Notes under the pieces: generated by a model | What the model was told of the DNA's origin: nothing | Database searches by the model: none | Seen by the model: only the letters and a program-made list of their open reading frames with translations | Source: Klebsormidium nitens | Lineage: Eukaryota > Plantae > Klebsormidiophyceae | Direction: 5' to 3' | Assembly (NCBI GenBank): GCA_000708835.1 | Contig: DF237216.1 | Coordinates: 1 to 64,000 of the forward strand | DNA: 64,000 bases | Shown: piece after piece, positions 1,890 through 54,985 of the stretch | Position numbering within the stretch: the stretch's first letter is position 1 | How the letters are laid out: each line of letters begins with the position of its first letter | Made by a program: the position numbers and the translations under genes

Positions 1890-4800
1890 ATGTCTGAGCG
1901 CGGGCTGAGTACCAGTTTACCGCATCCAGTCAAGAAGGAAATTAAGGAAGAGGAGTCCTCGGCAAGGCTGCCTAGCCGGGGCTCAGTAAAAAGCCAAGGA
2001 TGTCAAGCCACAGAGGCTATATTAGCTGCAGACGCATTCCTGAGTCAGGTAACACCCCATTTGGCACACGGTACTTTGATCAGCTCCAGTGTAGGAGCTC
2101 AGAAGAGGAGTCATTCTGTAGACAGTATTAGGCCTGTAAGAAAAGATCCCTCCACTGATGATGGCTGGTTCGCTCGCTCGTTTTCAGAGCCAGGCAGCTC
2201 AGCAACTGCAGGTTTCCACGGCGCTGGAGACGCCTTGTCAGCAAAGCAGTCAGACCCCGAGGGTCATCTCAGGCTACACAGACAGGCCACTTCAGACAAA
2301 GCAGTCCTTTTCTGTGATGAGTCCAGCCCTATGGAGGACTGTGCTCCTGCAGTTGATACTCAGCATGTTTCTCAGGAGGGGGCTGATGGAGGGGAAGCCT
2401 TGCCTGATTCAGCCTGGGGAGGGCAGCATTGGAATGCTGGTCAAGCTAAGGGAAGGGGGGGGCGGGAGGGGACTAGAAAAGGGCTTAACCTGAGCCGGGG
2501 TTCTCGCTCTTGGTCAAAAAAAGAGGACAGCATTCTGCTGCTGCACGTTGCAGCGCATGGAGAGGCGCACTGGAGAAAAGCAAGCGTGAGACTACAGCTT
2601 TTTCACCCCCTTGGTAACATTTTCTTCCTGACCTCCTGTTCCAACCAGAATCTCAAATTGCAAGCTTTTCTGAAGAATTGGCTACATAGGAATTGTTGGG
2701 TTTGACTGGACCATCCAGCGCCGTTAGATGTCAGGTCTGATGGCTCCGACATTGAAAGAGCGCACTCGCACTCTAACAGAACGATATAAAATGCATACCA
2801 AATCTTTCGAGTCAGCATACAAGCCAATAGACAAAGTTCGCAGGTGACCCTGCCATTACGATACCACTCGAGTTAAGCCTACATGAGGAAATTCATTGCT
2901 TTTTGGATTACAGGATTATGAGCCCTGATTCACCCTTCATATGCAAACAGCGTTTCTTCGTCACAAGTCGACAGCTGACCCTCTGAAACTGCAGGAAGTG
3001 TACGGGCTCAACCGCTCTGACAAGAGCTGCCGTCTCCGCTTCAAGAATCACCTTGCACCCAGCCTCAAGAAGACTCCACTTTCGGACGTAGAGTGGGCAC
3101 AAATCATCGAGCTGCACAAGCTTTACGGAAACAAATGGACCACCATCGCCAGCAAGCTCCCTGGCAGGTGACGCCTTTGATTCCATGATTGTCGTTGACC
3201 ATTTCAGTTCAGTCAGTCGTTTGAATGTTTCAGTAGCGTCGTTTTCCTGTCTTTGTGGTTGCTCTTTCCTTTCCCTTCATTATCGCTCCTGTCCTCCTCC
3301 TTGCTCGGGCTCTCAACTTTCTTGCATAAACATCTTGGAACGCTGATTGGTTGCAAGGTTTGACCTTCAACATTTGTGCGAAGAATGGCTTCTTCAGAAT
3401 TTTGTACAGAGATCGTCTTTGAATGAGCGGTGGCAGCAAGACTTGGTTGAAAAAGGTCGTTTCGAAGTCTGCATCTCCCTGCCGCAAGAGCATTCAAACA
3501 GCTATTTGTCTCTTGCTAATCTGCCGGTCCTGCGCTTACACATAACCAGCTCATAAGGATGAATGTTTTGTTAGATAATCTGGCACTGCATGACTGATGT
3601 TTGAAAAAGTGGACAATTCCTGGTTGAGAAATTCGCAAATCGTCTCCAGATTTTGTTGTGCTTCTAGGAGCCAGAGGCAGGGCGGAAGAAATCGGAAGAA
3701 ATGCTGTGTCGTCAGCCGGAAAGACGCTGCTGAGCTGGCACCGGCAACATTCCAAAGGGTAGTCGGTGCAAGCCGAGCTGAAAGTCCGTTTGCTGTGCTT
3801 CTTCATGCTACCGAACATTCAACCGTTCAGCTGGATAAAATTTCAACTTCTGCTCCCTAGCTAGAGCTTGAGTTTGATCGTCTCCTCACTTCCAGTTCTA
3901 CAGTTGCACACAAAGAATAAGACCTATGCTTTGACTTGCTCCTTTCTCGGCTCTGACCGAACGATCCTCTTTCCACAGAACCGACAATGAGGTCAAGAAT
4001 GCGTGGTACACGCAGCTGAAGCGGGCCGAGCGGAAGCGAAAAGAGCTCGACCTAGCGAAGCAGCCACGTTTTGCCATGGCCTCCAGCATCGAGTCCAACG
4101 AGCTGTCCACCAATCAGAAGCAGCGCCCGATCTCTGCAACCAGCGGCATCGACACAGAAGGGGACAGTGCGCGGGCACAATCTGCACCCCAGGGACGAGG
4201 CGCTAATCAAAGAAATACGGCGTGGGACCTCACCCAGGTACTGACGAAGCAAATAACGAACTTTTTGCGTTCTATGAGATCTTGGGGTTGACGAAGAGCG
4301 GTTGACACTGGTTTGTTGGAATGCTTTTGTTGCAGAGTGTTTGCAGCTTAGTCAAAAGAGTGTGAACCTAGAGACGCTTTTTCAAGTTAGCTTTGCGTTT
4401 TACTCTGGGATACTTCCACAATATAGAATCACGGTCGACCAGAGTCGAAGAGATGACCACCTAATTCGAAATTTCGAGTCGTTCTCTTACAACCTTCTGT
4501 TGCAGATCGAATTTCGACAGTTCAGCTTCTAAATACTTCGAAAGTAGCAAGCTCAACAACCTTGTCCAGTTTGACAGGCATGTAAAACCTTTTCTGCAGG
4601 AAGGGACTTTCAAGTTCCCTGCGGGAACGGGGAGTTCGAGCCTTGCTGGAGGATTCCCTCGCTACCCTTTGGGATACCCGCCTGTCTCTATCGCGCCACA
4701 AAGCGTACAGTCCCGAGCTAGCGAGAGCCACGGGTCATGGTTGGCGCAACCAGGTCCTGAGCAGCCATTCTCAGTGTGAGCTTCCTCTTATACCAACACT

Positions 4801-17275: not shown

Positions 17276-18093
17276 NNNNNNNNNNNNNNNNNNNNNNNNN
17301 NNNNNNNNNNNNNNNNNNNNNNNNNNNNNNNNNNNNNNNNNNNNNNNNNNNNNNNNNNNNNNNNNNNNNNNNNNNNNNNNNNNNNNNNNNNNNNNNNNNN
17401 NNNNNNNNNNNNNNNNNNNNNNNNNNNNNNNNNNNNNNNNNNNNNNNNNNNNNNNNNNNNNNNNNNNNNNNNNNNNNNNNNNNNNNNNNNNNNNNNNNNN
17501 NNNNNNNNNNNNNNNNNNNNNNNNNNNNNNNNNNNNNNNNNNNNNNNNNNNNNNNNNNNNNNNNNNNNNNNNNNNNNNNNNNNNNNNNNNNNNNNNNNNN
17601 NNNNNNNNNNNNNNNNNNNNNNNNNNNNNNNNNNNNNNNNNNNNNNNNNNNNNNNNNNNNNNNNNNNNNNNNNNNNNNNNNNNNNNNNNNNNNNNNNNNN
17701 NNNNNNNNNNNNNNNNNNNNNNNNNNNNNNNNNNNNNNNNNNNNNNNNNNNNNNNNNNNNNNNNNNNNNNNNNNNNNNNNNNNNNNNNNNNNNNNNNNNN
17801 NNNNNNNNNNNNNNNNNNNNNNNNNNNNNNNNNNNNNNNNNNNNNNNNNNNNNNNNNNNNNNNNNNNNNNNNNNNNNNNNNNNNNNNNNNNNNNNNNNNN
17901 NNNNNNNNNNNNNNNNNNNNNNNNNNNNNNNNNNNNNNNNNNNNNNNNNNNNNNNNNNNNNNNNNNNNNNNNNNNNNNNNNNNNNNNNNNNNNNNNNNNN
18001 NNNNNNNNNNNNNNNNNNNNNNNNNNNNNNNNNNNNNNNNNNNNNNNNNNNNNNNNNNNNNNNNNNNNNNNNNNNNNNNNNNNNNNNNNNNNN
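17276..18093. other. Assembly gap (N run)
   Basis: Run of N. The left flank (17100-17275) is GTAC-rich and repeat-like, suggesting a collapsed repeat. Confidence 0.99.
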
Positions 18094-20624: not shown

Positions 20625-21168
20625 NNNNNNNNNNNNNNNNNNNNNNNNNNNNNNNNNNNNNNNNNNNNNNNNNNNNNNNNNNNNNNNNNNNNNNNNNNNN
20701 NNNNNNNNNNNNNNNNNNNNNNNNNNNNNNNNNNNNNNNNNNNNNNNNNNNNNNNNNNNNNNNNNNNNNNNNNNNNNNNNNNNNNNNNNNNNNNNNNNNN
20801 NNNNNNNNNNNNNNNNNNNNNNNNNNNNNNNNNNNNNNNNNNNNNNNNNNNNNNNNNNNNNNNNNNNNNNNNNNNNNNNNNNNNNNNNNNNNNNNNNNNN
20901 NNNNNNNNNNNNNNNNNNNNNNNNNNNNNNNNNNNNNNNNNNNNNNNNNNNNNNNNNNNNNNNNNNNNNNNNNNNNNNNNNNNNNNNNNNNNNNNNNNNN
21001 NNNNNNNNNNNNNNNNNNNNNNNNNNNNNNNNNNNNNNNNNNNNNNNNNNNNNNNNNNNNNNNNNNNNNNNNNNNNNNNNNNNNNNNNNNNNNNNNNNNN
21101 NNNNNNNNNNNNNNNNNNNNNNNNNNNNNNNNNNNNNNNNNNNNNNNNNNNNNNNNNNNNNNNNNNNC
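20625..21168. other. Assembly gap (N run) inside a sulfotransferase exon
   Basis: Run of N. Both edges read CCGCGCTGC on the minus strand (AAL.. / SAL..), suggesting the gap may be oversized or artefactual. Confidence 0.95.
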
Positions 21169-21830: not shown

Positions 21831-24800
21831 AAATTTCAGCGTTTGTTTGTATCCAGCCTGGATGCCGAACGCAGTGAGTCGGAGGTTTCAAAACCTCAAG
21901 GCGGAGATCTAGGGTTAACCGTATCGTAGAGGTCCCAGCCTCATCCAGTTGCTGCCCACATTCCGCCGGCGTTCCGACCTGCGCAGGCTGGATCGGAACG
22001 GAACGGTAGATTCTACACCTTCGCATCAGTCTTCGTGAATTCAAGCTTCTGCTTGTGTACTAACAGCAATGCGCCTGAGACGAATAGAACGGGACGCGTT
22101 CCGGTCGCACAATTCTGGTCGTATCTCCTCGGCGAATCCGCTGGAGCCTGTCCGCCGGAACAGCACCAAACGGAAAGGCCGCATGCGCGCACGGGAGCCA
22201 GTCCGCCCAATGATTGGTCACACCCTGTGAGGAAGAAGCTTGCTTCCAGAGCGATATTCTGAATTGAACCATCTGGCAAGAATTCTGTCCGGCTAAATGA
22301 TCACGAAGCATCATCTCAAATTCGGTCGCCTTCGGGTAGTTTGAATGAATTCACTGCACGGAGAAAGCAAACGGTTCCTGCCCATTTGGCGACTCGAGGA
22401 ATTCAGACCTTTAGATATTGCTAACACAAAAGCTGAATCCAACATCGTCTGAGTCGCTCGCGCTTTCTAAGGTTCTCCATCCATTCAGAGCTCGTAGGAA
22501 GCACCGCACTTCACAGAAACTGCTTGGAAAAGGATCTGCAATCTATTCCCATTATCTGACCAGAAATGCGCCCAGGTCTTGTTTCATTCTGAGCGCACTT
22601 TTTCTCACCTGGTTGAGCATCCACTTCAACCCAACCGCCCGGAGGAACTTCTCCTCCGCCACGCGCCCCAGGTCGTACACGTCATCCAGCCGCGCGCGCT
22701 CGCGCGCGCCGTGCCACGTGTGCCCACTGAACAGCTCCTCGTGGCTGCGCACGTGGGGATGACTTTTCAAAAGCGTCTCGAACCAGCCGCTCCCGGACCG
22801 CTGCATCGACAGCAGAATGAAGGGCGCGACCGGCGTGCACGCGCAGGCGCGCGCGCGGCCGCGGCCGCGTGGCGCGAGGTAAAAGCGCGGAGGGCCGCCG
22901 GCGGGTACGGGAGGACACGTGGAATCGTTTCGTTGGTTGTCTGCGGTCCTTTCGGATTCAGAGTCGCGTTCACTTAAGTCTTTCTGGCTCAATACGTGAC
23001 ATTTCGAGCGCCCGTTTGCTTCTGGGCTCTCCTTTCCATCACTCCTCTCGTCACCTTCCGTATCTTCCTCGTCAGTGCTTTTTCCTTCTCTGCTGTCAGC
23101 TTCCTGCGTTTCCTTCAATCTGTTCTCACTGCCCTTGTCTCTTCAGTCATTCTCAGTTTCCCTTTGCTTTCCTTGTCTGCGCTCTTACGTTCTCCTTTCA
23201 AATTCCATTAATCTAGCCACAGAGTTCACCTCTTGCACCGCTTCTCCGTCGCTCTTGTCACGGACTGTCTCATCACACTTTTCGCCCCCTCAAAGCGCCA
23301 TACGGGGCTCTTCTCTGAGCTGCGGAAAGCTTCCTGAAGGAGCGCTCAAAGGAACGGGTTCCTGGCCTGTAGTGCAAGAAGTAATAAGTCAGAGGGGTTC
23401 CTGGTCAGCACATTCATTATATTAAGACAAATCAGAGGGGGGGGGTTGAATGCCGACAATGTTACGGGAAGCATGTATATATTCAAGGCGTCTATTTCTA
23501 TTCAATCTCCGCGCCACCAGAAGCTTCTTAAGTGGAGGCGGCTCACAGGTAAGGACAATAAAAGATGGTAGAAGCAAAGGCGCGCTGAGATAACTGGATA
23601 CATGTGCGAGATGAAGGAAGCCGCTCAGTAAGAGATGCCCTGTCTTTACTGGACCGCCCTTTTAACAGAAGTCCTGCCGGAGAATGGGAGACCACAGCGA
23701 ATGGGAAGATTAAGATTGAAAAGGTCAAAAGTGCGATCGAAAGCCAGGGTTCCGGGCTTTTTTTAAATCCTTTGAAGAAGCAAGTGAGATAAAGATGGCT
23801 TACTTGGGGCCGTGCTCTCTCGAGCATATCTTCTATGGATCCACAAGGAGCTTGACAAGACGACCCACAGTAGAAAGAGACCTCCTCTGTCGGGTATTGT
23901 CAACGCCATGGCTTGCTTGCCCTGCTTCCTTTTGGCCATGGAGAGAGAATCACAGGCGGCTAGCTTAAACAAAGGGTGCAAGGTAAGCCGTACGTAGGAC
24001 TCTGCTTGAAATAATCTGATTAGAAGAGAATGAATAGCCCAGAATGACGCAGCATCCGATAGGAACCTTGTACAGGCGAAAGAAAGAAAGGCACGGCTAG
24101 TGCTGATGAAGCAAAAGCTGGTCGATTGAAGCTTTGCCTGGGACCTCGTCATCCGTCCTGGAGAAAGTCAGCCAGACGAAAGCCGTGCTAAACGCAGTTG
24201 AGTGTCTACATCTTTTGGGTTTCTGCGATTGTAACGGAGAATTCGAGGCGTAAAAGCCGCAATGGATCAGTGAGACGTATTGCTACCACTATGACTCAAA
24301 TCATACACAGCGACTATTTTCATCACAAAGCCAAAGGCGTGACCTTGGAAGCGGCATCTTGTAAGAATAATGCTGAAGGTAAGCAATGGTTTGGCAGTTC
24401 AGTATGAGGACGTTGATGTTGTCATCATGAGCACTCCTTGTCAAAAGGCTGGAGATGTTTAGTGCGAGAATCTCGGCAGACTACATAACTTTGCAAATCC
24501 CCGGGCCCGCCGCTTCTGTTTGTTGCACACTGCTGAACGGCGCCTTTCTAGTTGCATGGCAGTTCTTTAGTAGGGGAAATAACGCCCTACTCAGAGAAGC
24601 ATACAACACAGGCTGGAATTGAGATCTGTTAATTTAACTCTGGGCATGTTAGTTTTCCCTGCCCGAGGATAATCAGGCATCCAAAGCGTTGAGAATCTTG
24701 TGCCCTCCACACGAAACGCAATGTCAATTTTGTCTAAGTGCAGTCCCTAAAGAAACATGCCTGTAAGTCTCAAAGCATTACCGTCCATGACAGAAGTCAA

Positions 24801-25175
24801 ACCGCCCTCGTCAGTTCTGATTAAACCGGGTTACGTCGCTCCAACTGTGGAAATCGCACCCGCAGACCAGGTGAACCGACCTTCAGGAAGACTTCAGGTG
24901 AACAGAGAGAGTCGACGATGACCGACGGAATTGCCGTTAACAGCTTAACGGTATCGCCAGTGATTTGATATAAGGGCCGCAAGTTTGACTCTTCAAACCA
25001 GGCCTCACCGATTCTTACAAGCCGCGTGGGCAATCTGTACCGCATCCGAGCCTTCATGATTTGGGGAAAAAAAGGGAAAATATTCTTTTGCAGAGAAACC
25101 CAGTTTGAGTTCAGATCGCTTCAAAAGTCGCATCTTTTACACAGGAAGAACCTCTTCCTTCCTTCCTCTACCATG

Positions 25176-25781
25176 CTACCCGTAACATCGATCCAAAGTG
25201 ACATAGTCTCTCCTACTGAGCAACTCATTTATGTGGAGTCGACCAATCAACCTCAAGTCGCTGTCTATTTCGATGAGAAGAGCCTTCAGCCTCAAGAGCT
25301 TTCTGTCCTTCAATTCATACGCTCTTAATCGAAGCCACCTTGCGGAGCTAATCACCGCTTTCGTCACGCCCCACTTTGAGAAGCAGTACTGCAAACATCC
25401 TTCTGTGCTCGGATAATCCTCCACAACGTTCAAAAGACGCCCTAAAATTCTCTCCCTTTCACCTTGTCGCTTTATCCGTTCTATCTGTGCTCCGATCCGG
25501 GAGTTTTCTTCAATGCCTAGCCTTTCAGCCCAGCGGCGCAGGCCCCCATCGACTGAGGGTTTGAAAATGTCCTGTAAAGAATGCTGACACCATTCTCTGA
25601 GCGTGACACATCGTCTTTCTAGAGCGTCCAGTCGGATGTTTAAAAGTGCGTCGTACGTCAAAACCGAGCCTGCGAGGGAATCTCGAAGCGGGCGGGCCAC
25701 GCATACCAGGCGGCCCAAGTCCGCCACACTTAGTTCCTCACGTTGGACGAGCAGGTAGATGACGTCACCAAATGCATCCAT
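25176..25781 (-). CDS. F-box-like/helical family protein, copy 1 (201 aa, single coding exon)
   Basis: ATG at 25781: MDAFGDVIYLLVQREELSVADLGRLVCVARPLRDSL resembles the F-box consensus. C-terminal WGVTKAV..RWL..RKLLRL is shared with the paralogues. Confidence 0.75.
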   Translation of the reverse strand: MDAFGDVIYLLVQREELSVADLGRLVCVARPLRDSLAGSVLTYDALLNIRLDALERRCVTLREWCQHSLQDIFKPSVDGGLRRWAERLGIEENSRIGAQIERIKRQGERERILGRLLNVVEDYPSTEGCLQYCFSKWGVTKAVISSARWLRLRAYELKDRKLLRLKALLIEIDSDLRLIGRLHINELLSRRDYVTLDRCYG

Positions 25782-25875
25782 GCTGGCGTGCCGTTTCCGC
25801 CGTCTCGTCACGGAAGCGGCGGAGAGAGCGGATCCAAGTTCTCAAAGAAGCGTCGACAGCCCAAAGACCTGCGCA

Positions 25876-26862
25876 CACAGGGAGATTTGGTTTTCTCCCC
25901 CCCTTTCTCCCCCCCTTCTCTCCTCTCGGGGGGCGGAGAAAACATTCTCCCCCGGTCGGGGCCGAGTGGGGGAGAATTCTCCACCACATAAGGGGCGGAG
26001 AACGGTCTCCCCACGGAGGAGAAATTCTCCCCCTTCTGACGATGCGGGGGAGAACAAGGGGAGAATTCTCCCCCTAGTTAACCAGTGGGGGAGAAAATTC
26101 TCCCCCTACTCTCCCCCGCTCCTCTCAGGCGAAGGCGGCATGCAAGCCGTTCGAACGTCCAAATGATGCATTAAAAGTTGTTTGAGTATCCTTTGGTGTT
26201 GCTAAAAGCATCAATTTTGCTAAAGGTTTAAATTGCTCGGTTTTATTAACTTGTCTATATTTTGGTCGTCCAAGCCCCCACTAAGGTATTTGCTTAGCTG
26301 TAAACTGAATCAGAGCGGATGGAATTCACGAACGTACTTTAATTTCCGTCTCTACTAGAGAGCTTTTGAAGATAACATACACGCTAAAAGAGGCGTAGAG
26401 TCTTTTGCAAGGCGCAGATTCTCAAAATAGTCACTACATCAACGGTATATAAATTCAAAGCTGATCCCTAGCGGTACACAGAAGTGAAATAGCTCAGGTG
26501 GTTAAGGCGTCAGGTCTAGCAGTCGGAAGACAGGGGTTCAAGTCCGGGTGGTGACAAGCCTGCAACATTTTCCAAAATCAATTTCTATTTTATGTTTTAG
26601 CATTCAAAACCTTTCTTGCCGGTCTCACCAAGCATACCCGGGTGCGTTTTTTCAAGATTTCCAAACACTTTCCAAGAAACGAAGCAATTTTTGAGTGGGA
26701 GAGAAAAGTGGAGGAGAATTCTCCTCCGGTGGGGGAGAGGGGGTGGAGAGTGACGGTTCTCCTCCCCCCGGGGAGAAGTGGGGGAGACAGGTGGGGAGGC
26801 ATGTCTCCCCCGGTTCTCCCCCTCTTCTCCCCCCGGTGGGGAGATAACCAATCCTCCCTGTG
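25876..26862. mobile_element. Non-autonomous CACTA/CMC-superfamily DNA transposon (987 bp)
   Basis: Termini CACAGGGAG...CTCCCTGTG; 25-bp TIRs match at 22/25. 3-bp TSD GCA at 25873-25875 and 26863-26865. Subterminal arrays of GGAGAA/TTCTCC motifs in both orientations. The paralogous locus near 30790 lacks the insert. Confidence 0.9.
26483..26557 (+). other. Degenerate tRNA-like sequence (Pol III A-box and B-box) inside the CMC element
   Basis: A-box TAGCTCAGGTGG (26490-26501) and B-box GGTTCAAGTCC (26535-26545) at tRNA spacing. The acceptor and T stems do not pair, so it is not a functional tRNA. Confidence 0.7.
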
Positions 26863-27764
26863 GCAGAGAAGCTGTTGAGGCTATGGTACAAATTTAGGGA
26901 CCTTGACGACACTCAACAGATCGGAGAAGCTTCTTGGGCGGAATCAAGGCGGATCTGTTGCGCTGAACTAGCCTAAGAAATTGATGGTTCAGACTTTGCG
27001 AGGACAAGCTAGTAAGGGCCTCAACCCATGCTGCTGCTATCTGCCGCTTTATCCGCAAGCTCTGTCCTCCAAGTTTTCAACAAGGAAAGACGCTACTGCA
27101 AGAAGAGGGCCCGGAGCTCTTCAAATGTCACTTGAAGTAAAGACCGCTGTCAGATTCAGTGGAAGACGGGCAGGTTGAAAGGCATTACGTTGAGCTTAGA
27201 CCATGGGGATTCACCTATGCAATCAGCAGTACTCGTATAAATCAGCCGAAGATGACTCCAACTTTGGACTTGCAACAAGCTTACGGTTTCTCCTTGTGAG
27301 CAACAGACAGTTCACGTACTCAGTCTTTAAAATGCTTCCAACTTTGCAAGATTGACAAGATTGTTCCACCAATAATAAGATCCAGGTTCGAGGCGTGTAC
27401 TCTGAACAAACGAACACAGAGTCCCATCTAAGGTCGAGTTGATAACCAAACGAGGGAGCTTACAAAAGAACCGCTGCTCCATTTGTGACCTTTTCTCCGC
27501 ATGATGGGTGGCAGTGAAACGCCGTGCCAACAAGCCATCAGATGGCACTGGCGTCAGATTACATCAGCTTGTTGCTGTCATTCCAAGCCACGGAGTACTC
27601 AGGCGACCTACCTCAGAATGTTCAGTGCGGCGCTCCTTCGCTTGTTCTGACGAGCTTGTCTTGTTCAGCGTACCAGGCCAGTTTTTTTAAAATCGCACAT
27701 CCTACAGTAGTTTCTGATGCACGGTCCCAGCCTGTAGGTAGCTTTTTGTGAGTGACCTGAGAAA

Positions 27765-27925
27765 CTCAGGCGCGGCGCGGCGCGTACGTCGCGCGGCATA
27801 TGGCGCGCCGCGCCGTGTCACCCGCCCGGCCACCGCGCGGTTGCAACCCGGCGGGCGCGTCCGGCACAGGTCCTAAACCAAACTCGGAACCCTTCGTCCG
27901 AGTTTGCGGCCGCGACTCGGACGTG
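27765..27925. promoter_or_regulatory. GC-rich putative bidirectional promoter island between F-box-like copies 1 and 2
   Basis: CG-rich inverted repeats (ggcgcggcgcg...cgcgccgcgcc) and GCGGCCGCGACTCGG, located between divergent genes and homologous to 31740-31870. Confidence 0.5.
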
Positions 27926-28738
27926 CCTGCAGAGCGGCGTCTGGAAGCCTTTGTGCGAAAAATACTTGAATGAGGTGCTAGTATCAGGAGCTTCGGGAGC
28001 TCCGCCCAGACGAAACCCGCTCTTTTGGTTTCAGGTGCTCTTGAAAGGTGTTTTTACACGAGGTGGGTTGGCGGACACGCGCCTTTCTTCTGTAAACTTA
28101 GCGATATTTAGTGCATACACTAAGAGCATATTGGACCTGTGCCAAGATTGAAGTGAACTTTTTTGAAGTGTTTTAAGTCGTCTTGCATCTTACGGTACTG
28201 CGTGTAAGTGCAGTCTTAACCTGTGATCAAACCCTGGCTTCTTCAAAGCTAGGGGCGCTGTTGACGTTGCAATATCAGTGCTGGTTGAACAACTCAGCGT
28301 ACTGGACAAATGATTAACTCGGATGAATAAGAGAACTTGGTGAACTGGCTAACAAGTGGTGGGCTAACGCCCAGTCATAAGTAGAAAATAATTTGTGATA
28401 CTTTTCGGTTTTTACTAAAGAGGACATGATTGGGACGTGATGATAAGCAATTGGCATTGCCAAGAGATTAAGGCGGAAACCTACGGACTGATGCTTGCAG
28501 AAAGCCGGAACAAACACAGGCCAAGCTTCCGCTTTTGCTCTGTTGTCCACAGCTAGTGATCAGGAGACTGGTCCCTGGACTTGCTTTTGGAGACTTTTCC
28601 CCAGACATAGGGTTCAGTCACTGAGTCGAGAGTGTGGAAACACTTAGAGAGATTGAAACACTCACGCCGCAACACTAGCTCTCTGCATGCCTGCAGAAGA
28701 AGTAGTCGGTGAGGGCGATGCGGAGTTGTTACGAAGCT

Positions 28739-29353
28739 ATGGAGGCCACCAGTGACGTCATCTACCTACTCGTACAACGTGGAGAACTAGAGGTGCGAGA
28801 CTTGTGCCGCCTGGTCTGCGTGTCCCGGGCACTCAGAAGCTCTCTCGCCGGAACGGTTCTCACGCGCACCGCAGTTTTGAGGTACCGAGTAGAGACGATA
28901 GGCAAGCGGTGTGATGTCCTTGAACAAAATTGTCAAAATTTTCGTTACGTTCTTCTACGAGATCTTCAACGCCACTGCGAAGAATACTGGGCTCCTGAGA
29001 CTCGTAGCTATCTTGAACGGCTCAAGCTGTTGAAGGAAAGACTCCACCGGGTCAAAGCCGACCTAGAACGGTTGGGGAAAGAAGATCCGGGTCCGCTTAA
29101 AAACGGTTTGAACTCTTTGGAGGGGTACTTGACCTTAGAAGGACCGGAGGAAGTTCAGCGCTGCGCAAAGTTTTGGGGCATAACAGGAGCGTTGAAGCAG
29201 TGTAATGAGTGGCTTCGAGAATGGTCGTTTTGGGCACGGCAGAGGAAGCTTTTGGCGCTGGGCAATAATCTACAGAGATTCGAGTCGGAATTGAGTTTCG
29301 CCTGCCGGATGTACAGGCTAGAGGAACTGTTGCGACATCGAGGTTACATGTGA
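28739..29353 (+). CDS. F-box-like/helical family protein, copy 2 (204 aa; alternative ATG at 28718)
   Basis: MEATSDVIYLLVQRGELEVRDLCRLVCVSRALRSSL... with WGITGALKQCNEWL...RKLLAL. 5'-UTR acceptor cctgcag at ~28696. Confidence 0.78.
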   Translation: MEATSDVIYLLVQRGELEVRDLCRLVCVSRALRSSLAGTVLTRTAVLRYRVETIGKRCDVLEQNCQNFRYVLLRDLQRHCEEYWAPETRSYLERLKLLKERLHRVKADLERLGKEDPGPLKNGLNSLEGYLTLEGPEEVQRCAKFWGITGALKQCNEWLREWSFWARQRKLLALGNNLQRFESELSFACRMYRLEELLRHRGYM

Positions 29354-30069
29354 TGGGCGGAAAGAAAAAAAGGCCAGAAAATAGAAGTCCACCTGGTTCT
29401 GATCTGCTCTCGTTCGGATTGCCACAAATTAAACGTATGAAATTTTCTGCACGTAGCTTTTGAGAGTGCGAGCTTTCAAGTTACAGTGTTTACTTGCTGC
29501 ATATCAGACCACGGGGTCCATTGGCAGAAACGCGGCCACCGAGAGTCCTTCAAACACAGCAGTATTCCTATGTAGAATGGCAATACCTTCATGAGTTTGT
29601 GAGAGAGATTGAGTCTGCTTCTTCTGACATTTAGAGCTCCATTCATGAGATTTGCGCCGCGGTTCTAAGCAGTGCCAGTAATGCTTGAGTGCTCGAGGAG
29701 AGATGGTAATTCATCGGCAAAGGGTTGCGCCGGTAAACAGAGGTCGTCTGAAAACATTCGGGAAAACCGATTCTACTTCAACGGGCGGATAGCTTTGGTC
29801 CAACTGAAAGCATCATGCAGCGGGCCAAATAGCTCGAGACCAGCAGTACGCTTTGAATTCCGCGCAGGAAATGGACGTATGGCAGCGCACATGCAATACA
29901 AAAAACAGGGCGCGCGGTCGCGTTCATTCTCGTGCTCTCAGGATCGACAGCAAAGCCTGTATCTGGGAGGGTTTAACAAGGATCAAAATTCTGTTGTTGT
30001 AAAGTCCTCGCTGGACATACTAGTCGACTGCATGTTCTGGAAGCGATATGTACGTCAACTTTGACTTTT

Positions 30070-30709
30070 TACTCTCTAACTTGATACATTGGAAGCAAAC
30101 GGACAGAAGTCCCCATGACGAGTATCTTCCCCACACGGTATGCATCACCTATTATAGACGATAGATCTAGGTCCAGTTCAATCAGAAGAGCCCTCAGCCT
30201 CACGAGCTTTCCGTCTGCCAATCAATGTGCGCTCAAAGCCAAGCCATGCAAATTTCAAACTGCGCTTCCTCTTTGGTCAAACCACAATTTGAAGCAACAA
30301 ATCTCAAAAACTTGGTGTTTCAATAACCTTCCAGGATGCTGAAACGCTAGTCTGGACTTCCTCCAGTCCCTCTACTCCACTCCTGTCCCGGGCAACTATG
30401 CTTTCACCCGGGCCGGTTCCTTTCGTTTATTCACCCAATCGAGCAACTTGCTGCGCACCTCTGCCCTTGAATCTATGCCAATGATCCTTTAATTGTCTTC
30501 CTTGCGCTGTTGACAAAGGCTTCGAGCGCTAGGGCGCAACGGCTTTCTAGAGCGTCCAGTTTGTACCTCAGAATGACGGCACGCGTCAGAACCGTGCCGG
30601 CGAGGGAATCTCGAAGCGGGCGGGCAACGCATACCAGGCGTCCCAAGTCCGCCACACCTAGTTCCTCGCGTTGGACGAGCAGGTAAATGACGTCACCAAA
30701 GGCGTCCAT
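30070..30709 (-). pseudogene. F-box-like family copy 3, truncated and frameshifted
   Basis: The N-terminus is nearly identical to copy 1 and the ORF stops at 30473. Downstream, other frames retain LSAH*LADGKLVRLRALLIELDLDL, homologous to copy 1 LRAYELKDRKLLRLKALLIEIDSDL. Confidence 0.8.
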
Positions 30710-31739
30710 GCTGGCGTGCCGTCACGGAAGCGGCGGGGAGAGCGGACCCAACTTCTTAAAGGAGCGTCAGAAGCTCCGAAGTCCTGCGCAAACAATCCGT
30801 TGTTCAGGGTACATCAAGTATTAGGTTCAGGGGATTCCAGGGAACTAGAAGGACTTTCAAGACTGCGAAGCAACGAGAGCTTTCAAAACGAGAAAAGCGG
30901 GGTACTTTTCAATATGCTGACCTAGATTTGTACCGTCACGAATTGATATTCGTTTCAGAGCTGACATAGAAAAGTAAGGGCCCACTGCGGCGTTCGTGCC
31001 GCTTCACCCGCCAGCGCTGTCCCACAATTTGTCACAAGGAAAGACGCTACTGCAAGGAGAGAGCCCAGCGCTCTTTACATGCCACGAGCTTGAAGTAGAG
31101 ACTGTGGTCAAAGTCAGTGGCAAACTAGGCAGTTTACAGGCATCGCAAGGAGCTTAACAGACCAAGATGAATCGCTTACCACTGATCAATGTTAACTAAC
31201 AGAAACCCCGACTTCGAATTTGAGCAACAGGCTCCCCGTTATTCCTGGTACAGTAGCTATTGACCCTAACTAAACAAGGAACACAATTCAGGTAATTTGA
31301 ACAAGGGGACCAATGTAAGGTCAAGCTACGTAAGAACGTTGAATAACAAAACGAGGGCGTTTATAGAGAACACAGAACTGAGACCGAACTGTGCGTACTC
31401 TCCTGACATCAAGTGATGGGTAGAAGAGAATCCATTCACACGGGCTATTATGTGGCAACGTCGCAAGTGGCACAAGCCGCGCTCGGTTCCCTTTGGCTTG
31501 CAATTGACGTCCCGCAAACGGGGGTTTTTGGCAGGCGTGCAGCTACCAGCTTTGAATGTCCTGTACGCGCTACAAGGCTTTTGTTGTTGATCAGATTGTA
31601 CTGATGAGCTGACTTTGCAAAACAGGCCGAGTCTTGGAACAATTGCACACCCTCATGTGCACGGCTTCTTATGAAGGTGAGTCCACGGACAATCACTACG
31701 TGAATGAGAATTGACGGTCCTGAGAGGCCGAGATGTGGC

Positions 31740-31870
31740 GCGTGGCCGCTCTCAGTATAGTAGTATAGGAACGGATCGACCGCCGTCGCGGCCGCGCCCT
31801 GCCGCCCTATAAAACCCTTCGAATTTTCTGCAAACCCCTCGGACTTCGCGGCGCGGCCGCGACTCGGTTT
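31740..31870. promoter_or_regulatory. GC-rich putative bidirectional promoter island between copies 3 and 4
   Basis: GCGGCCGCG at ~31788, CTATAAAA at ~31807 and CGCGGCGCGGCCGCGACTCGG at ~31846; homologous to the 27765-27925 island. Confidence 0.5.
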
Positions 31871-32643
31871 TTGCAGGGGGTCATGCAGTCGCGCCAGGGC
31901 TTGGATACGACAAATGACAAAGTCAGCACCTGGAAGCGCCTGTGCGACGAACTCCAGGTTGCTCAAGTATTGGTGATGCGTTCTGCTTTTGGTCTCAACT
32001 GATCTTGACGGGCAATCGCAACTGAGGTAAGTTATTCACGCGCCTCTCTTCTCTGGAAGCGATGAGTGCGATTACTGAAAAGGGAATCTGTGCCAACATG
32101 CGCATGGAGTTGTTGCTCTGATTGGTGCCCTCGTCCTGCTTACATGCACTGCGTGTAAGTGCAGTCTGATCTTCTGTTCGAATCCGGCTTTCAGAATGCT
32201 AAAAGCTGTTTCGATTTGAGTGCTGGAACAACTTGGGATGCTGGAAGTCCATGCAAACGAATTCTTGTAACAAGAACACTGTTCAAGGTTTAGGCTATTG
32301 CCCAGTAAGTGAGACGCTTTGAAGGCTTTGTGTTTTCTCACGTATGGGCGGGACTTGCATGAAACAGTTACAGCGGCCACCGCTAAAAGGAGCTAGGCGG
32401 AGATTTGCTTGCCAAGTGCAGATCAAACCTTATGCCAAGCTTCTGCTTCTGCTTCCTGTACAATCTTTAAAACTTCTAATGCGGTAATCCTTTCCTGGCC
32501 TTGATGTTTGGGAGTTAATTCCAATCCGCTGGCCTCACTAATTCAGGTTGGGAAACCATGAAACAAGCACTCAAGTCGCATCAGCTTTTCGCTATTTCGC
32601 ATGCCTGCTGCAGGAGACGTCATTGGTAAACACGCGGGTCTAG

Positions 32644-33282
32644 ATGGAAATGGACGCCTTCAGTGACGTCATCTACCTGCTTGTCCAACGGGAAGAACTA
32701 GAGGTGCGGGACTTGGGCCGCTTGGTCTGCGTGTCCCGACCGCTCAGAAGCTCTCTTGCCGGACCGGTTCTGACCCCCGCCGCCATCGTGAGGTACCGGG
32801 TCGATATAGTAGACAAGCGGTGCGAAGCCTTGAGAACCGCTTGTCAGAATAACAAGAATCTCCTTCTACAACGAGAGCTGGAACGCCAGATACTCCGTGA
32901 TTGGTATCCCGACGGTCAGTATTATATCAAACGGCTAGAGCGGTTGCAAGGGAAAAGCGACCGAGTCAAAGCCAACTTAGAGAAGTTGCGTAAACAAGCG
33001 GAGGTAGAGGGCCCGCTGGGAGCAGTTTTGATCCGTTTGGAAGCATATTTGACCGTAAAAGGGTCGCAGCAGGTTGAGCAATCCGCGAAAAGTTGGGGCG
33101 TAACAGGAGCAGTTACGCAGTGCAAGGAATGGCTTGGAGCATGGACGTACCGGGCACAGAAGAGAAAGCTTCTGAATCTGGGCGGTGTTGTAAAGGAACT
33201 GCGGGAAGATTTGATGGAAATATTCTGGATGTACAGGCTAGCTGAATACAGACTGCAGCGGCTTCCATCATATTTAAGATAG
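32644..33282 (+). CDS. F-box-like/helical family protein, copy 4 (212 aa)
   Basis: MEMDAFSDVIYLLVQREELEVRDLGRLVCVSRPLRSSL...; colinear with copy 2 throughout (RVKANLEKL, GPL, YLT.KG, WGVTGAVTQCKEWL, RKLL, MYRL). Confidence 0.8.
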   Translation: MEMDAFSDVIYLLVQREELEVRDLGRLVCVSRPLRSSLAGPVLTPAAIVRYRVDIVDKRCEALRTACQNNKNLLLQRELERQILRDWYPDGQYYIKRLERLQGKSDRVKANLEKLRKQAEVEGPLGAVLIRLEAYLTVKGSQQVEQSAKSWGVTGAVTQCKEWLGAWTYRAQKRKLLNLGGVVKELREDLMEIFWMYRLAEYRLQRLPSYLR

Positions 33283-35435
33283 GCCAGAATTGCACAACTG
33301 GTGGTGCAGGTGTCACTTGGTGGGAGTCATGCACAAGGGCCGGGATAGAATCAATAGCCTCTTTTTTGGAGACCGCCAGAGCTGTGGTTTACAACCCGAG
33401 AGTTGTTTCGTTTATCTTGCATTTCTTTACCACAACATCTAGAAAGGCGAAGTAAGTACAAGGCCATGTCAGAGGGTTGTCAATGCTCATAAGAAGAATC
33501 CAGAGCAGAAAGATTTAGATCTGGATGCTTGAGCGCTATGATGATGAATAAATTCACTTGTAGTGCATTTCCTTCATTTCATGAACTCGAAGAACACAGC
33601 GCTCCGTTCATTGAGCATGTCTATGGACACACTTGAGAGCCCATACTATCACGTTCGCGCGTCATCTCGATGAAGAATGCAAAAAAATATAGTACCGCGC
33701 AGCTTTGTGGCCGCCTCTATTGCCTGCCAGCTCTCGCGGTCAGATCACTTCTGCTCGCTGAAGAGGAGAATACCCGATGTGTCTAGCTTCGTACAGCCCA
33801 ACTTGCTCCTCAGTACCTCCGACGCATGCACCGTTTGGACTTTCATGCAGCACACATATGTACAGTTTCTATGCTGTTACTCTCCTTACGTCCTCGCAAG
33901 TGTACAAGTGAATACCACAGGTGAGCCCCTGAAGCCACTGCTTGCAGAGACCGATGACGTCAAGGATCTCGGGCCCCTTAACCTCGCACCCAAGATATTG
34001 TTTTTGGCGGATTGTTCGATAGCCACCAGAAAGGCGTGGGATATTGTACATCGTCGATTTCCGCAAACTTCGCACCTATTGAATCGCAGACTTGTTGTGC
34101 AACATTTTGGGTGCGGGTTAAAGGTGCCCTGAGGATGGATCAGCGGCCTCTGGGCTGTCGCGCCTTCCAGGTGTGCTTCATGTACTGCTCAACTGCTCCA
34201 ACAATCGAGTGGCCAATGCAACATAGCTTGTAAACATGCATCGACGCCCGCGCGCCGTGCGGCCGCGCTAGTCTCCAGCCCGCCAGCTGCAGCCTAAATC
34301 CCGCGGAAGCCGCCGCGCGCCACGGCCGCGTGTGCCTTAGCTCCGTCAGTCTGACGCGGTTCTGACGGTCGCTTGCCTTACTGAAAAACGACTGGCAGGC
34401 CTGAACAAACTAAAAATTCAGATTGAAGCTGTCGTGCAAAGAACCCCCTGGCCAGCATCAGATACCCGGAAGGCTGTTCGAAGGGCGCCCAGAAGCCAGC
34501 CGGCCTGGTAGATCGAATCAAGAATTAATCACTAAGCAGGCAAGGTCACGACGAGGGCCTCCGGAGAGTTTGGGTAAGCCAGGTCAGACGACGGGCATGC
34601 TAAAGGTCAGTTGCTTTACGGTATCTGCGACAGAGTGGAGGCCTCACAAAAGCCTCGCTGTAAATCAGGTCATGGGAGCTGGTGTAGAGTACTGATCAAT
34701 GGCACGGAGCGTTTGTTTCAAGAAGTCACGTGGGTTTGTTCACGGACTTTTTCTCTCCTCACAGGGTGCTTTCAAAGCGAAACTTGCAAACCTTATTACG
34801 AATAGAAAACATTTCTCGAACATCGTCCTTGCTTTGAAGCATTCGCGTTCGAGCTTCCTGTTATGCTCAAGACGGAGAACCTGGGCTGTGTTTGTGCAGG
34901 CAACTGCTTTTTTCTCCAATGTCTGGGAGGGGAAATTTTCGTATTGCAGAATGACCTTCCTACTGATTGATGCTCCTTTCCCCTTTTTTCTGCTGTGATC
35001 GTTCTTCGGAAATTCGTGACTTTTCTTGCCCATCCTTAGTATATATTTCTTAACCGTCCTCAATAGCTTTCTCTTTTCAAGCACCTTAGAAGATGTACGG
35101 TCACGATCTCGAAATCTATAGAAATGGTCGGATTGCTCACTAGGTTATCAGTAGTTAAGGTTACTTGCTCCTTTAGCTTCAGCCGTTATTCTCTCAAGTT
35201 CTGCGCTAAAACAATTGGCAGACGCATGAATAGTGGTGCTGCATAGTTTCAAGTTCTAACCGACCAGGTTTAAGGCAAACACACTTCAGCTTCTTCCGAG
35301 CAAAACCATCAACTTTAGCGGACTAAAAGACATTCATGTCCTGTCAGGTTTTTCGATCAGCCCACACGAGCGCACAGCGTCTTGAGACGAGCGCTCACCT
35401 TCGAACAAAGCGACACTAGAAGAGACGCTGTAGGG

Positions 35436-36056
35436 ATGGCCGCTTTTGATGACGTCATCTACTTCCTCTTCCAACGGGGTGATCTGAGTCTACGGGACTT
35501 AGCCCGCTTGGCCTGCGTGGCGAGCCCAAAAAGAGACTTTCTCGCCTCCTTTCTCACGTCATCCGAGGTAGTCAACTTTCGGGTAGACACTTTCGAGTCG
35601 CGCAAGAAGAGTCTTCGTGGAAGATGGGAGCCTCTGAAAGGAAGACTGAGCGACGCTTCACTCCGCCGGTCGAGCCGTAGGACCGAGGCAACGGAATTTG
35701 TGGATGAGCTTCTTCGTACCGTAGAGCTGATTTTGGAAATGGAAGAGAAGGCCTTGAATAGGTTGAAGCGGGTACGAGCGGCGCGCGAGCGGTTTGCTAG
35801 GTTTCTGAAGACGCGCTTTTGCGCGCCGCGGGTTTCGCAAAGGCATGAAAGTACAGCGGGATTTATCAAGGGAGCCGCCGCCGCGAAGGTCGCAAAGTGG
35901 CTTGCGAAGGGGCCAAAAAAGGCAAGAGAAATGCAGATCACGGCATTCAAGTTAACGAAATCTTTTGATAAGCTTGAGGAACTCATCGAAGTCAGTGGAA
36001 CTTTTGAATCGAGTATATTCATGTATCTCGCATTCTACTGGCGGCAGCTTGGATAG
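35436..36056 (+). CDS. F-box-like/helical family protein, copy 5, most divergent (206 aa)
   Basis: MAAFDDVIYFLFQRGDLSLRDLARLACVASPKRDFL...; charged helical body. GC island with GCGGCCGCG upstream at ~34250-34330. Confidence 0.72.
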   Translation: MAAFDDVIYFLFQRGDLSLRDLARLACVASPKRDFLASFLTSSEVVNFRVDTFESRKKSLRGRWEPLKGRLSDASLRRSSRRTEATEFVDELLRTVELILEMEEKALNRLKRVRAARERFARFLKTRFCAPRVSQRHESTAGFIKGAAAAKVAKWLAKGPKKAREMQITAFKLTKSFDKLEELIEVSGTFESSIFMYLAFYWRQLG

Positions 36057-53400: not shown

Positions 53401-54985
53401 CCTGACCATCACGTTACCAAAATACACCGGGACAGCCAGAAGATGCTAAAAGGGCACGATCAAAACGAGCATGTACGACTTTCTCAGAATGTCTTTCCAA
53501 AGCCCGCATTGAAACCTGTCGGCGACAGAAGAAACAACCTCCGAGGACCAGAACAACTGTAATAGAAGCTGCTCCTATCAAAGCCCAGTTGTCATTCTAG
53601 AACGGCGCTCTGTCGGCCTTTCTGACGCCTGGGAAACATTCTGCTTTCGCAATTGTGCTACATTTCTTCCTTGCTGCTTAAACTTTCGCAAGCTCCAAAT
53701 TGCACTAACTGGAAACTATGCCTTAGTTATAGGCTAAAACTTTGAAAACTCGTGTGCAAACTCCCCAAACATTGCAAAATGGAGCACGACATCAGTCGCC
53801 TTGAAAGGCGGGCTTTATATGGCCCAGAAGGACATTGGCTTGCACAGAAGGATCAAAACATATGATACAATGGTGATAGGTAGGAGAACCTTCCAGGGAT
53901 AAATGCAGGTCCAAAGTTGGCGTCTCCACCACTTCTCGAAGTTATCCAAGTGTGCCGCCACTAACTATGCCCCATTTCATGGTCCCTATTGCCGAACCAG
54001 ACCTCCGTCCCAAAGTCAGATCATCTTGGGTGAACAGAATTTGGTGCTAATTCTCTTATTAATATGCCCCAGTGGGCTTCACATCAGAATCAGCATTTTC
54101 AGTCCCGAACTTGAGATCTCAGTTGACGGCCCGTCCAAATCCTTGCAGCAATCCGGTCCTTACGATCAGCGAACCCTAATGCCTGCGACAAAATCGAGAT
54201 CCGCACGAGACACCGCACCTGTCAACCAGATGGCTCCCAACGAAGCCCGCTCCTCCAGTCACCAGGATCCTCTTTCTGGATCGCGGCAGCGGCATCGGTT
54301 TGCTCTTCACAACCGCAGACTCGAGTCCCTTCTCCTCCACCACCCGTCTCTCGACCACCTCGTCCTCTTTCCTCAGAGAAGCTGCGCCATCGTCTTCAGT
54401 CTCATCCAAGTCTGGTTCGGCCTCCTTGACCAAAGCTGACTCCCTTTTGCTCTCACTCAATCGGGTCTGAGTGGCCCACTTCTCTTCCGCTATCTCGTCT
54501 ACATCCATGGGGTCTACCTCATCGCTCCGGTCCTTCTTTTGCACTGCTTTCGCTGCGTCGTTGAGCTGCTTATCAACAGAACTTGCGGCATCGCTGGGCT
54601 TCTTCTTATCGACCTTCCCAAGAGCCTCGGCTTTTGTGAGCCCCTCTTTTGATCCCTCCACTTCTTCCAGTTCCGAAGGCCATGACTCCGTCACCCCCCC
54701 ATCAGACTGGGCCACCTCCTCTGCATGGGTTTCAAACTGAGGTTCCGCGATCCCCCCGGAAGCATCCCCCTTCACAGTGACTTTTATCGGATTAGCCAGA
54801 CTCGGCTCAGAGTAACCAAAATGCTGCCCTGTTGGTTGGTACACGTAAAGCAGAGCTGCAATTGCGATGCCGGTGAACACAAACAGCGCTTTGCCCCGAC
54901 ACAAGCAGCCCAAACCGCAGCAAACGTTTCGGGGGGGCGGCTTCCCGTTATAGCGGTGGGGCCGAGGCACCCCCCGGAACGCCAT
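47424..54985 (-). CDS. UXS: UDP-glucuronate decarboxylase (UDP-xylose synthase), membrane-anchored type, 7 exons, 554 aa
   Basis: Exons 54985-54219, 53007-52652, 50096-50017, 49646-49563, 49137-49063, 48597-48505 and 47633-47424 join in phase. Motifs [79 protein letters not shown]; N-terminal TM helix. Confidence 0.96.
48260..48531 (-). repeat. 157-bp-offset tandem duplication of a UXS exon 3' end, donor and intron start
   Basis: gag-tt(c/t)-accatgctcgagctcgccgag|gtgggcat occurs at 48531-48497 and again at 48374-48340; the adjacent intron sequence is also homologous. Confidence 0.88.

Follow-up and report, generated by a model that had tools for sequence, protein, structure and literature searches.

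Introduction

The best-described counterparts of the locus examined here are F-box genes. The canonical F-box, as found in Skp2, Fbw7 and TIR1 (PF00646, PF12937), is a three-helix unit of about 40 residues that packs on the C-terminal helices of SKP1. In plants, 3,589 of 10,811 F-box loci were reported by Hua et al. in 2011 to have no recognisable C-terminal module, and lineage-specific, weakly constrained and poorly expressed loci were attributed to 'genomic drift' (PMC3030570). In Caenorhabditis, the FBXA, FBXB and FBXC expansions are clustered and species-specific, turn over rapidly and combine a conserved box with a variable substrate side (PMC8665587). Here we describe a cluster of five related sites at positions 25,176 to 36,056 of a 64,000-nucleotide stretch of the streptophyte alga Klebsormidium nitens (assembly GCA_000708835.1, contig DF237216.1, positions 1 to 64,000 of the forward strand; hereafter the window), which a first-pass annotation had read from the DNA letters as five intronless F-box-like genes. 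We consider it moderately probable that these genes form a small, lineage-restricted family of minimal F-box proteins, in which a divergent SKP1-docking box is joined to a helical bundle and copies are born and decay locally.

The family pattern, with its restriction to one lineage, tandem clustering, relaxed purifying selection, frequent pseudogenes and little or no evidence of expression, matches the plant loci attributed to genomic drift (PMC3030570), and the algal proteins likewise appear to consist of an N-terminal F-box followed by an unclassifiable C-terminus. They differ in that the Pfam models by which the plant loci were defined do not recognise so divergent a box, the proteins are only about 205 aa long with the box beginning at residue 1-3, about 10 members can be detected in all public data, and the host is a streptophyte alga and not a land plant. 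The nematode families share with it the clustering, the fast turnover, the species specificity and the contrast between box and substrate side; however, they carry defined FTH or FBA2 domains, number in the hundreds and have reported positive selection, which is not demonstrated in the algal family. Taken together, the algal genes are a previously unrecognised subfamily of a well-known, fast-turning-over gene class and not a new kind of system.

Results and Discussion

Four intact genes and one pseudogene

The window is eukaryotic, with a G+C content of about 50%. A six-frame regular expression and a six-frame hidden Markov model (HMM) search located exactly five sites encoding DVIY[LF]L[VF]QR..L...DL.RL.CV, and the six-frame N-terminal HMM detected no sixth copy in the 64 kb. 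The cluster consists of four intact genes (c1 to c4), each a single uninterrupted open reading frame (ORF) of 201-210 codons from a conserved ATG and about 205 aa long, and one pseudogene, c5 (Table 1). The five paralogues of the first-pass annotation are thus five motif sites, but not five genes: c5 opens with an N-terminal ORF of 78 codons (30473-30709) that runs into stops and frameshifts, and its C-terminal motif is left as a decayed remnant at 30153-30296 with two in-frame stops. The C-terminal signature WG[VI]T...WL...RKLL, which had been credited to four copies, is intact solely in c1, c2 and c3, is broken in c5 and occurs in c4 in a divergent version lacking the WG.

The first 45 residues are 43-82% identical among the copies and their relatives, and the remainder 14-64%. 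The c1 protein joins a predicted cryptic F-box to a helical-bundle body carrying WGVT...WL...RKLL, and c2 is the window copy closest to two proteins of a related alga, P0001 and P0002. The c4 protein has the same N-terminal box, but its body is only 14-20% identical to those of the other copies; c4 represents a separate and older subfamily.

The copies are arranged head to head in two pairs, with ATG-to-ATG distances of 2957 bp for c1/c2 and 1940 bp for c5/c3; c4 lies downstream of c3 on the same strand. The two spacers share short blocks of homology (27042-27198 with 30997-31156, and 28197-28241 with 32148-32192), from which it follows that a cassette of roughly 4 kb with a divergent gene pair was duplicated.

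Table 1. Coordinates of the cluster features within the 64-kb window.
Feature	Position	Strand	Basis or remark
c1, intact gene, 201 codons + stop	25176..25781	-	ORF; alignment; N-terminal HMM, E 3.6e-31; dN/dS
c2, intact gene, 204 codons + stop	28739..29353	+	ORF; alignment; HMM; dN/dS
c5, pseudogene of c1 type	30069..30709	-	frame and DNA comparison
c3, intact gene, 210 codons + stop; alternative ATG at 32644	32650..33282	+	ORF; alignment
c4, intact gene, 206 codons + stop	35436..36056	+	ORF; alignment; HMM
Predicted cryptic F-box of c3 (residues 1-45)	32650..32784	+	AlphaFold2 model, co-fold
Modelled body of c3 (residues 40-210)	32767..33279	+	AlphaFold2 model
Duplicated head-to-head cassette, c1/c2 and c5/c3	25176..33300		spacer homology
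Upstream motif GCATGCCTGCAG	28685..28696	+	43 nt before c2 ATG
Variant of the GCATGCCTGCAG motif	32599..32613	+	37 nt before c3 ATG

Predicted docking of the N-terminal box on SKP1

Judging from predicted structures, the N-terminus of these proteins is likely to be a genuine but very divergent F-box. Four independent lines point this way, among them co-folding with SKP1. To obtain a partner, contigs were scanned with a degenerate pattern of NDFTPEEE, a conserved SKP1 motif, which led to nine giant-virus contigs (L008-L016, IMG/VR), several of which carry complete intronless SKP1 genes; the one at 2263-2724 of L016 is plant-like, with Pfam matches to Skp1 (1.4e-29) and Skp1_POZ (9.4e-20). When residues 1-67 of c3, the copy taken for both the structure model and the co-fold, were folded with SKP1, the interface score ipSAE was 0.63 in three runs out of three, against 0.00, 0.03 and 0.00 for the controls. 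The partner had a predicted local distance difference test score (pLDDT) of 77-78, and at least 97% of the contacts were common to the runs. In the calibration set, 51 of 78 solved complexes and 2 of 108 mismatched pairs attained this ipSAE mark. The predicted interface brings SKP1 residues 90-153, which are the F-box site on the C-terminal helices and the surface used by canonical F-boxes, together with residues 3-33 of the partner, and it encloses 11 of the 13 conserved family positions (hypergeometric p = 4e-4). The invariant residues L17, L25 and V28 belong to this predicted interface. The structure prediction with SKP1 that had been proposed as a check of the F-box reading is thus favourable in silico.

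The predicted fold of the box is a further line. An AlphaFold2 model based on 12 sequences reached a mean pLDDT of 80.1 and a predicted template modelling score of 0.68 and contained no strand; an earlier run on 5 sequences, with a pLDDT of 52, was left out of the fold searches. The box of c3 was modelled as short helices at residues 2-13, 19-28 and 30-36 ahead of the first long helix, recalling the canonical three-helix unit. Its hydrophobic spacing, L-x5-L-x6-V-[SA]-[RK]-x-[L/W], fits the F-box consensus and lies in the same register as the sole Pfam alignment obtained, which pairs residues 12-35 of a distant relative, P0010, with positions 10-34 of the 47 of the F-box-like model. As a lead only, the named clusters among the ESM Atlas neighbours of residues 1-60 are without exception F-box or F-box-like (top score 0.90).

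Several observations weigh against the assignment. None of the proteins and segments scanned reached the gathering scores of the F-box profiles PF00646, PF12937 and PF15966: neither the whole proteins c1 to c4 nor any window copy scanned singly gave a Pfam F-box match at E<=10, and 2 of 14 N-terminal segments matched an F-box model below threshold, the best being P0010 with 15.2 bits against a cut-off of 24.3 bits (E 0.019) and the second lying among six segments, three of them window copies, that were scanned as part of the set of 14. The proposed check by Pfam HMM has therefore failed, and the F-box reading is supported by the predicted structure and docking. Profiles of the whole family and of its N-terminal 67 residues retrieved no F-box chain from the PDB at E<=10; the best PDB matches of the family profile were MarR-type winged helices. 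Unlike canonical F-boxes, the algal box has Ala-Phe in place of the Leu-Pro that precedes helix 1, Leu in place of the helix 3 Trp (the V-[SA]-R is present) and a stretch between helices 1 and 2 that is longer by one to two residues. The neighbour score of 0.90 was also reached by 4-10% of shuffled proteins. As for the co-fold, its SKP1 partner was a 154-aa protein from a giant-virus contig and not the alga's own, and since SKP1/F-box complexes are common among solved structures, a pass indicates F-box likeness and not binding.

The winged-helix matches invite another explanation, namely that the N-terminal unit is a winged-helix or helix-turn-helix (HTH)-like DNA-binding domain and the proteins are small coiled-coil transcription or chromatin factors. 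The matches cover the helix 2-3 region of the MarR family, ungapped over 25-31 residues (E 0.057 and 0.078), and 2 of 14 members weakly match MCM5_C, which is a winged-helix domain (E 0.057). However, every one of these E-values is non-significant, the AlphaFold2 model has no beta wing after helix 3, no HTH family occurs among the named ESM neighbours, and both the pass of the SKP1 co-fold over its controls and the mapping of the conserved residues to the predicted interface point elsewhere. We regard a DNA-binding unit as decidedly improbable, and the MarR-type PDB matches (E 0.06-0.08) were judged to be due to chance, as were PDB matches to 14-3-3 proteins (E 0.07). Other Pfam matches of the proteins and of their N-terminal segments (Sas-6, MSG, DegV, SURF4 and others) were rejected as noise.

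In the F-box reading, the first 40 or so residues would form the divergent box and dock on the C-terminal helices of SKP1. If so, some F-box genes of streptophyte algae escape standard HMM annotation, those described here having been recovered only through co-folding with SKP1 and language-model features; SCF (SKP1-cullin-F-box) adaptors at the root of land plants have therefore probably been undercounted.

Two further SKP1 frames on the giant-virus contigs were unusual. That of L015 (4380-6392, minus strand) is an ORF of 671 codons in which a large unrelated C-terminal part follows the SKP1 domain, and in L012 an insert interrupts the SKP1 frame within the conserved C-terminal helix region.

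The predicted helical body

In the model, the body of c3 is an elongated antiparallel helical bundle whose helices span residues 43-82, 88-118, 122-149 and 151-207. A Foldseek search of the PDB and of viral models (BFVD) with the full model returned nothing at E<=0.001, and the best row of an ESM Atlas fold search was a PspA/IM30-like bundle with a template modelling score of 0.59. Alignment with VIA-align gave Z 13.8 (root-mean-square deviation 4.5 A, 156 aligned residues) to TBK1 (6nt9_A), and BAR domains and designed bundles followed with Z 10-12; according to the calibration of the tool, such values are typical of any helical bundle. The small N-terminal box is swamped by the bundle in such whole-model searches. 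Residues 40-210 thus resemble the TBK1/IKK scaffold-dimerisation domain, BAR domains and designed 3-helix coiled coils in overall shape, but the identity is 5-13%, which denotes a common arrangement and not kinship or shared function. Pfam detected no known F-box partner module (LRR, WD40, Kelch, FBA and others) in c1 to c4. Such a module is no requirement, since it is lacking in many F-box proteins of the FBXO type or without a class (PMC3030570). Since the fold searches give only generic bundles, the body is no specific known module, and the first-pass annotation was right in assigning the C-terminus to none of the standard F-box partners.

By analogy with other F-box proteins, the remaining 165 or so residues might bring substrates to an SCF ubiquitin ligase, or might pair two such proteins. 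Both roles of the body, substrate binding and dimerisation, and with them the function of the proteins as SCF adaptors, we infer entirely from this analogy, a point that counts against the account as a whole.

Relatives and distribution

A profile search of 1.84 billion protein representatives yielded 10 matches, all about 140-270 aa long and having the N-terminal 65 residues in common; two were full-length and eight share only the first 65-110 residues or so. A word-indexed search of 5.8 billion proteins found one relative, and a second profile search added one more, P0011. All are unnamed or 'hypothetical' proteins, encoded on unannotated contigs of algal type from one Logan run and one JGI metagenome whose G+C content, about 50%, equals that of the window. 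Pattern scans of metagenome contigs and of 2.9 million viral contigs produced pattern matches, none of which was confirmed by tblastn. The family is tiny, all members known so far coming from this alga or from close relatives of it. As exact sequences, the five window ORFs are absent from a collection of 15 billion proteins and may therefore be unannotated, which we also count against functional genes.

The arrangement of the genes recurs in the relatives. On two contigs of the Logan run, L001 and L005, a c2-type gene is followed by a c1-type gene in convergent orientation, in the same manner as c2 and c5, and on L004, a relative's contig, two genes lie head to head. In L001 the frame of the c1-type copy (2502-3069, minus strand) is otherwise well kept but is interrupted behind the box by a stop (LERR*ATLEG), for which recent pseudogenisation, an error of assembly or read-through may account. 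P0008 and P0011 lie on separate contigs (L002 and L006; JGI 3300060284), each with PP2C fragments about 8-10 kb downstream, and these contigs probably represent one locus in two haplotypes or strains, or else a segmental duplication.

Multi-copy, intronless and unannotated genes might also be parts of a transposable element or of an integrated virus, and a match to a known transposon ORF had been named as an observation that would overturn the F-box reading. No link to a transposon or a virus emerged. Besides the lack of a confirmed relative on the viral contigs, the ORFs between the genes contain no Pfam domain, including transposase, reverse transcriptase and integrase; no terminal repeats bound the units, the homology of the cassettes being limited to the genes and the short spacer blocks; the G+C content of the cluster is that of its surroundings; and the copies are old, with a synonymous divergence (dS) of 0.7 to more than 2, unlike those of a recent burst. 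A mobile or viral origin is accordingly very improbable.

Selection, turnover and possible gene conversion

The ratio of non-synonymous to synonymous divergence (dN/dS) was estimated pairwise by the Nei-Gojobori method, separately for the box (first 45 codons) and the body (the rest), in fifteen pairs, seven of which were bootstrapped. In the bootstrapped pairs the box ratio was 0.16-0.38, rising to 0.50 over all fifteen, while the body ratio was 0.43-0.83. The bootstrap 95% intervals lay below 1 in 12 of 14 box and body comparisons, the body interval including 1 only for c1-c2 and c2-L005A, and no pair had a ratio above 1. Copies c2 and c3 gave 0.23 (95% interval 0.07-0.58) for the box and 0.59 (0.37-0.89) for the body, L001A and L005A gave 0.34 and 0.54 (body 0.33-0.91), and c2 and L001A gave 0.38 and 0.61 (body 0.38-0.95). 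Frames of about 205 codons that are still open at this synonymous divergence, with dN/dS below 1, indicate long-term constraint at the protein level. The box is strongly constrained and the body evolves under relaxed constraint; conflict is not demonstrated. The contrast between a conserved N-terminus and a fast-evolving body that the first-pass annotation drew shows both in the identities given above and in the lower dN/dS of the box.

The 5' ends of c1 (25656-25794) and c5 (30584-30722) are 93% identical in DNA over 139 nt, and the rest of c5 has decayed. In addition, in 11 of the 14 pairs in which both could be estimated, dS of the first 45 codons was below that of the remainder. Together, these two patterns suggest gene conversion confined to the 5' end that encodes the box.

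The turnover by birth and death that had been proposed is supported: there is a pseudogene in the window, an in-frame stop in a relative and a duplicated cassette, and the relatives hold lineage-specific duplicates of their own. We propose that the family expands and decays through local duplication of the head-to-head gene pair, that the box would be held by purifying selection, perhaps assisted by gene conversion at the 5' end, and that the body would evolve under relaxed constraint, with copies lost as pseudogenes. Within 11 kb the cluster offers a compact example of a constrained putative SKP1 dock, a fast-diverging body, a pseudogene and a duplicated cassette.

Expression and the alternative of genomic drift

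The search for transcripts was negative. No RNA run in the index contained words of 27800-33700, and none of the contigs assembled from four presumed RNA runs (four studies) fell on 24900-30850, a test that used assembled contigs without a positive control and left c4 outside its range. Both results count against working genes only as absence of evidence and not as silence; the lack of RNA contigs is nevertheless noteworthy beside the absence of the ORFs from protein collections. A lack of transcription from every copy had been named as a refuting observation; no transcript was detected, but in a weak test.

These observations bear on the possibility that the genes are F-box-derived but effectively non-functional products of genomic drift, silent or near-silent duplicates that are turning into pseudogenes, their 5' ends being kept partly by gene conversion. 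Such loci are exactly those described in plants (PMC3030570). The missing transcript contigs and protein entries would be expected of them, as would the loss of one copy in five here and the stop in one relative copy, body ratios that reach 0.73-0.83 in some pairs with intervals including 1, and the signs of conversion in the low dS of the first 45 codons and in the near-identity of the c1 and c5 5' ends. However, four ORFs of 201-210 codons have stayed open although dS ranges from 0.7 to more than 2; for most pairs, including those between species (c2 with L001A and L005A), dN/dS lies significantly under 1 in box and body alike; at least two other sources contain intact homologues; and the expression test was weak. 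We therefore consider drift relics unlikely, and prefer a family of minimal F-box proteins under long-term constraint.

A further proposal of the first-pass annotation, that the proteins are SCF adaptors in genetic conflict, either in anti-pathogen defence or as a selfish toxin-antidote locus with the head-to-head A/B pair as its functional unit, is not supported so far. The conserved box and fast-diverging body would suit it, as would the restriction to one lineage and the head-to-head pairing of two diverged paralogues, seen twice in the window and again on L004; nematode and plant F-box expansions have been linked to such roles (PMC8665587, PMC3030570). However, body dN/dS never exceeds 1 in any pair and most intervals lie below it, the sequences being too few for site-wise selection tests; no partner, target, toxin-like domain, pathogen-related neighbour or expression was found; and the pairing may merely reflect duplication of the cassette. 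Conflict is thus an improbable explanation. A more specific version, in which the c1-type and c2-type genes, divergently transcribed from a promoter region of 2-3 kb, encode a heterodimeric SCF receptor assembled through the bundles and the changes in the body are adaptive within a lineage-specific conflict, is in our opinion slightly less probable still. The family as we read it fits the established picture of F-box birth and death, and would open a new question only if the conflict reading were true.

Upstream DNA and neighbouring sequence

A short motif, GCATGCCTGC(TGC)AG, is kept upstream of all c2-type genes, both in this genome and in the relative (L001 and L005), where it lies about 30-40 nt 5' of the gene ATGs; it occurs twice in the window against 0.01 occurrences expected. 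The form found before c2, GCATGCCTGCAG (Table 1), could be a candidate 3' splice site of an intron in the 5' untranslated region, perhaps the splice acceptor that had been noticed earlier ahead of the ATGs. Alternatively, the upstream motif could be a candidate RY-like cis element, as it contains CATGCA, which we take to resemble the RY elements bound by B3 factors.

The spacer between c1 and c2 exceeds that between c5 and c3 by about 960 bp (25879-27042 compared with 30794-30997). The extra DNA, at about 25895-26798, is flanked by imperfect inverted arms of about 93 nt that consist of low-complexity sequence rich in TCTCCCC/GGGGAGA; this DNA may be a small insertion or merely a simple-sequence expansion.

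Outside the cluster, runs of N at 17276-18093 (818 bases) and 20625-21167 (543 bases) represent assembly gaps and are the cause of the artefactual long 'ORFs' and low G+C bins at these positions. Two neighbouring exons on the minus strand were recognised, neither having an apparent link to the cluster: that at 22552-23118 is sulfotransferase-like (Sulfotransfer_3, E 1.7e-5), and that at 54176-54985 resembles the start of a gene of the NAD-dependent epimerase / UDP-glucuronate decarboxylase type.

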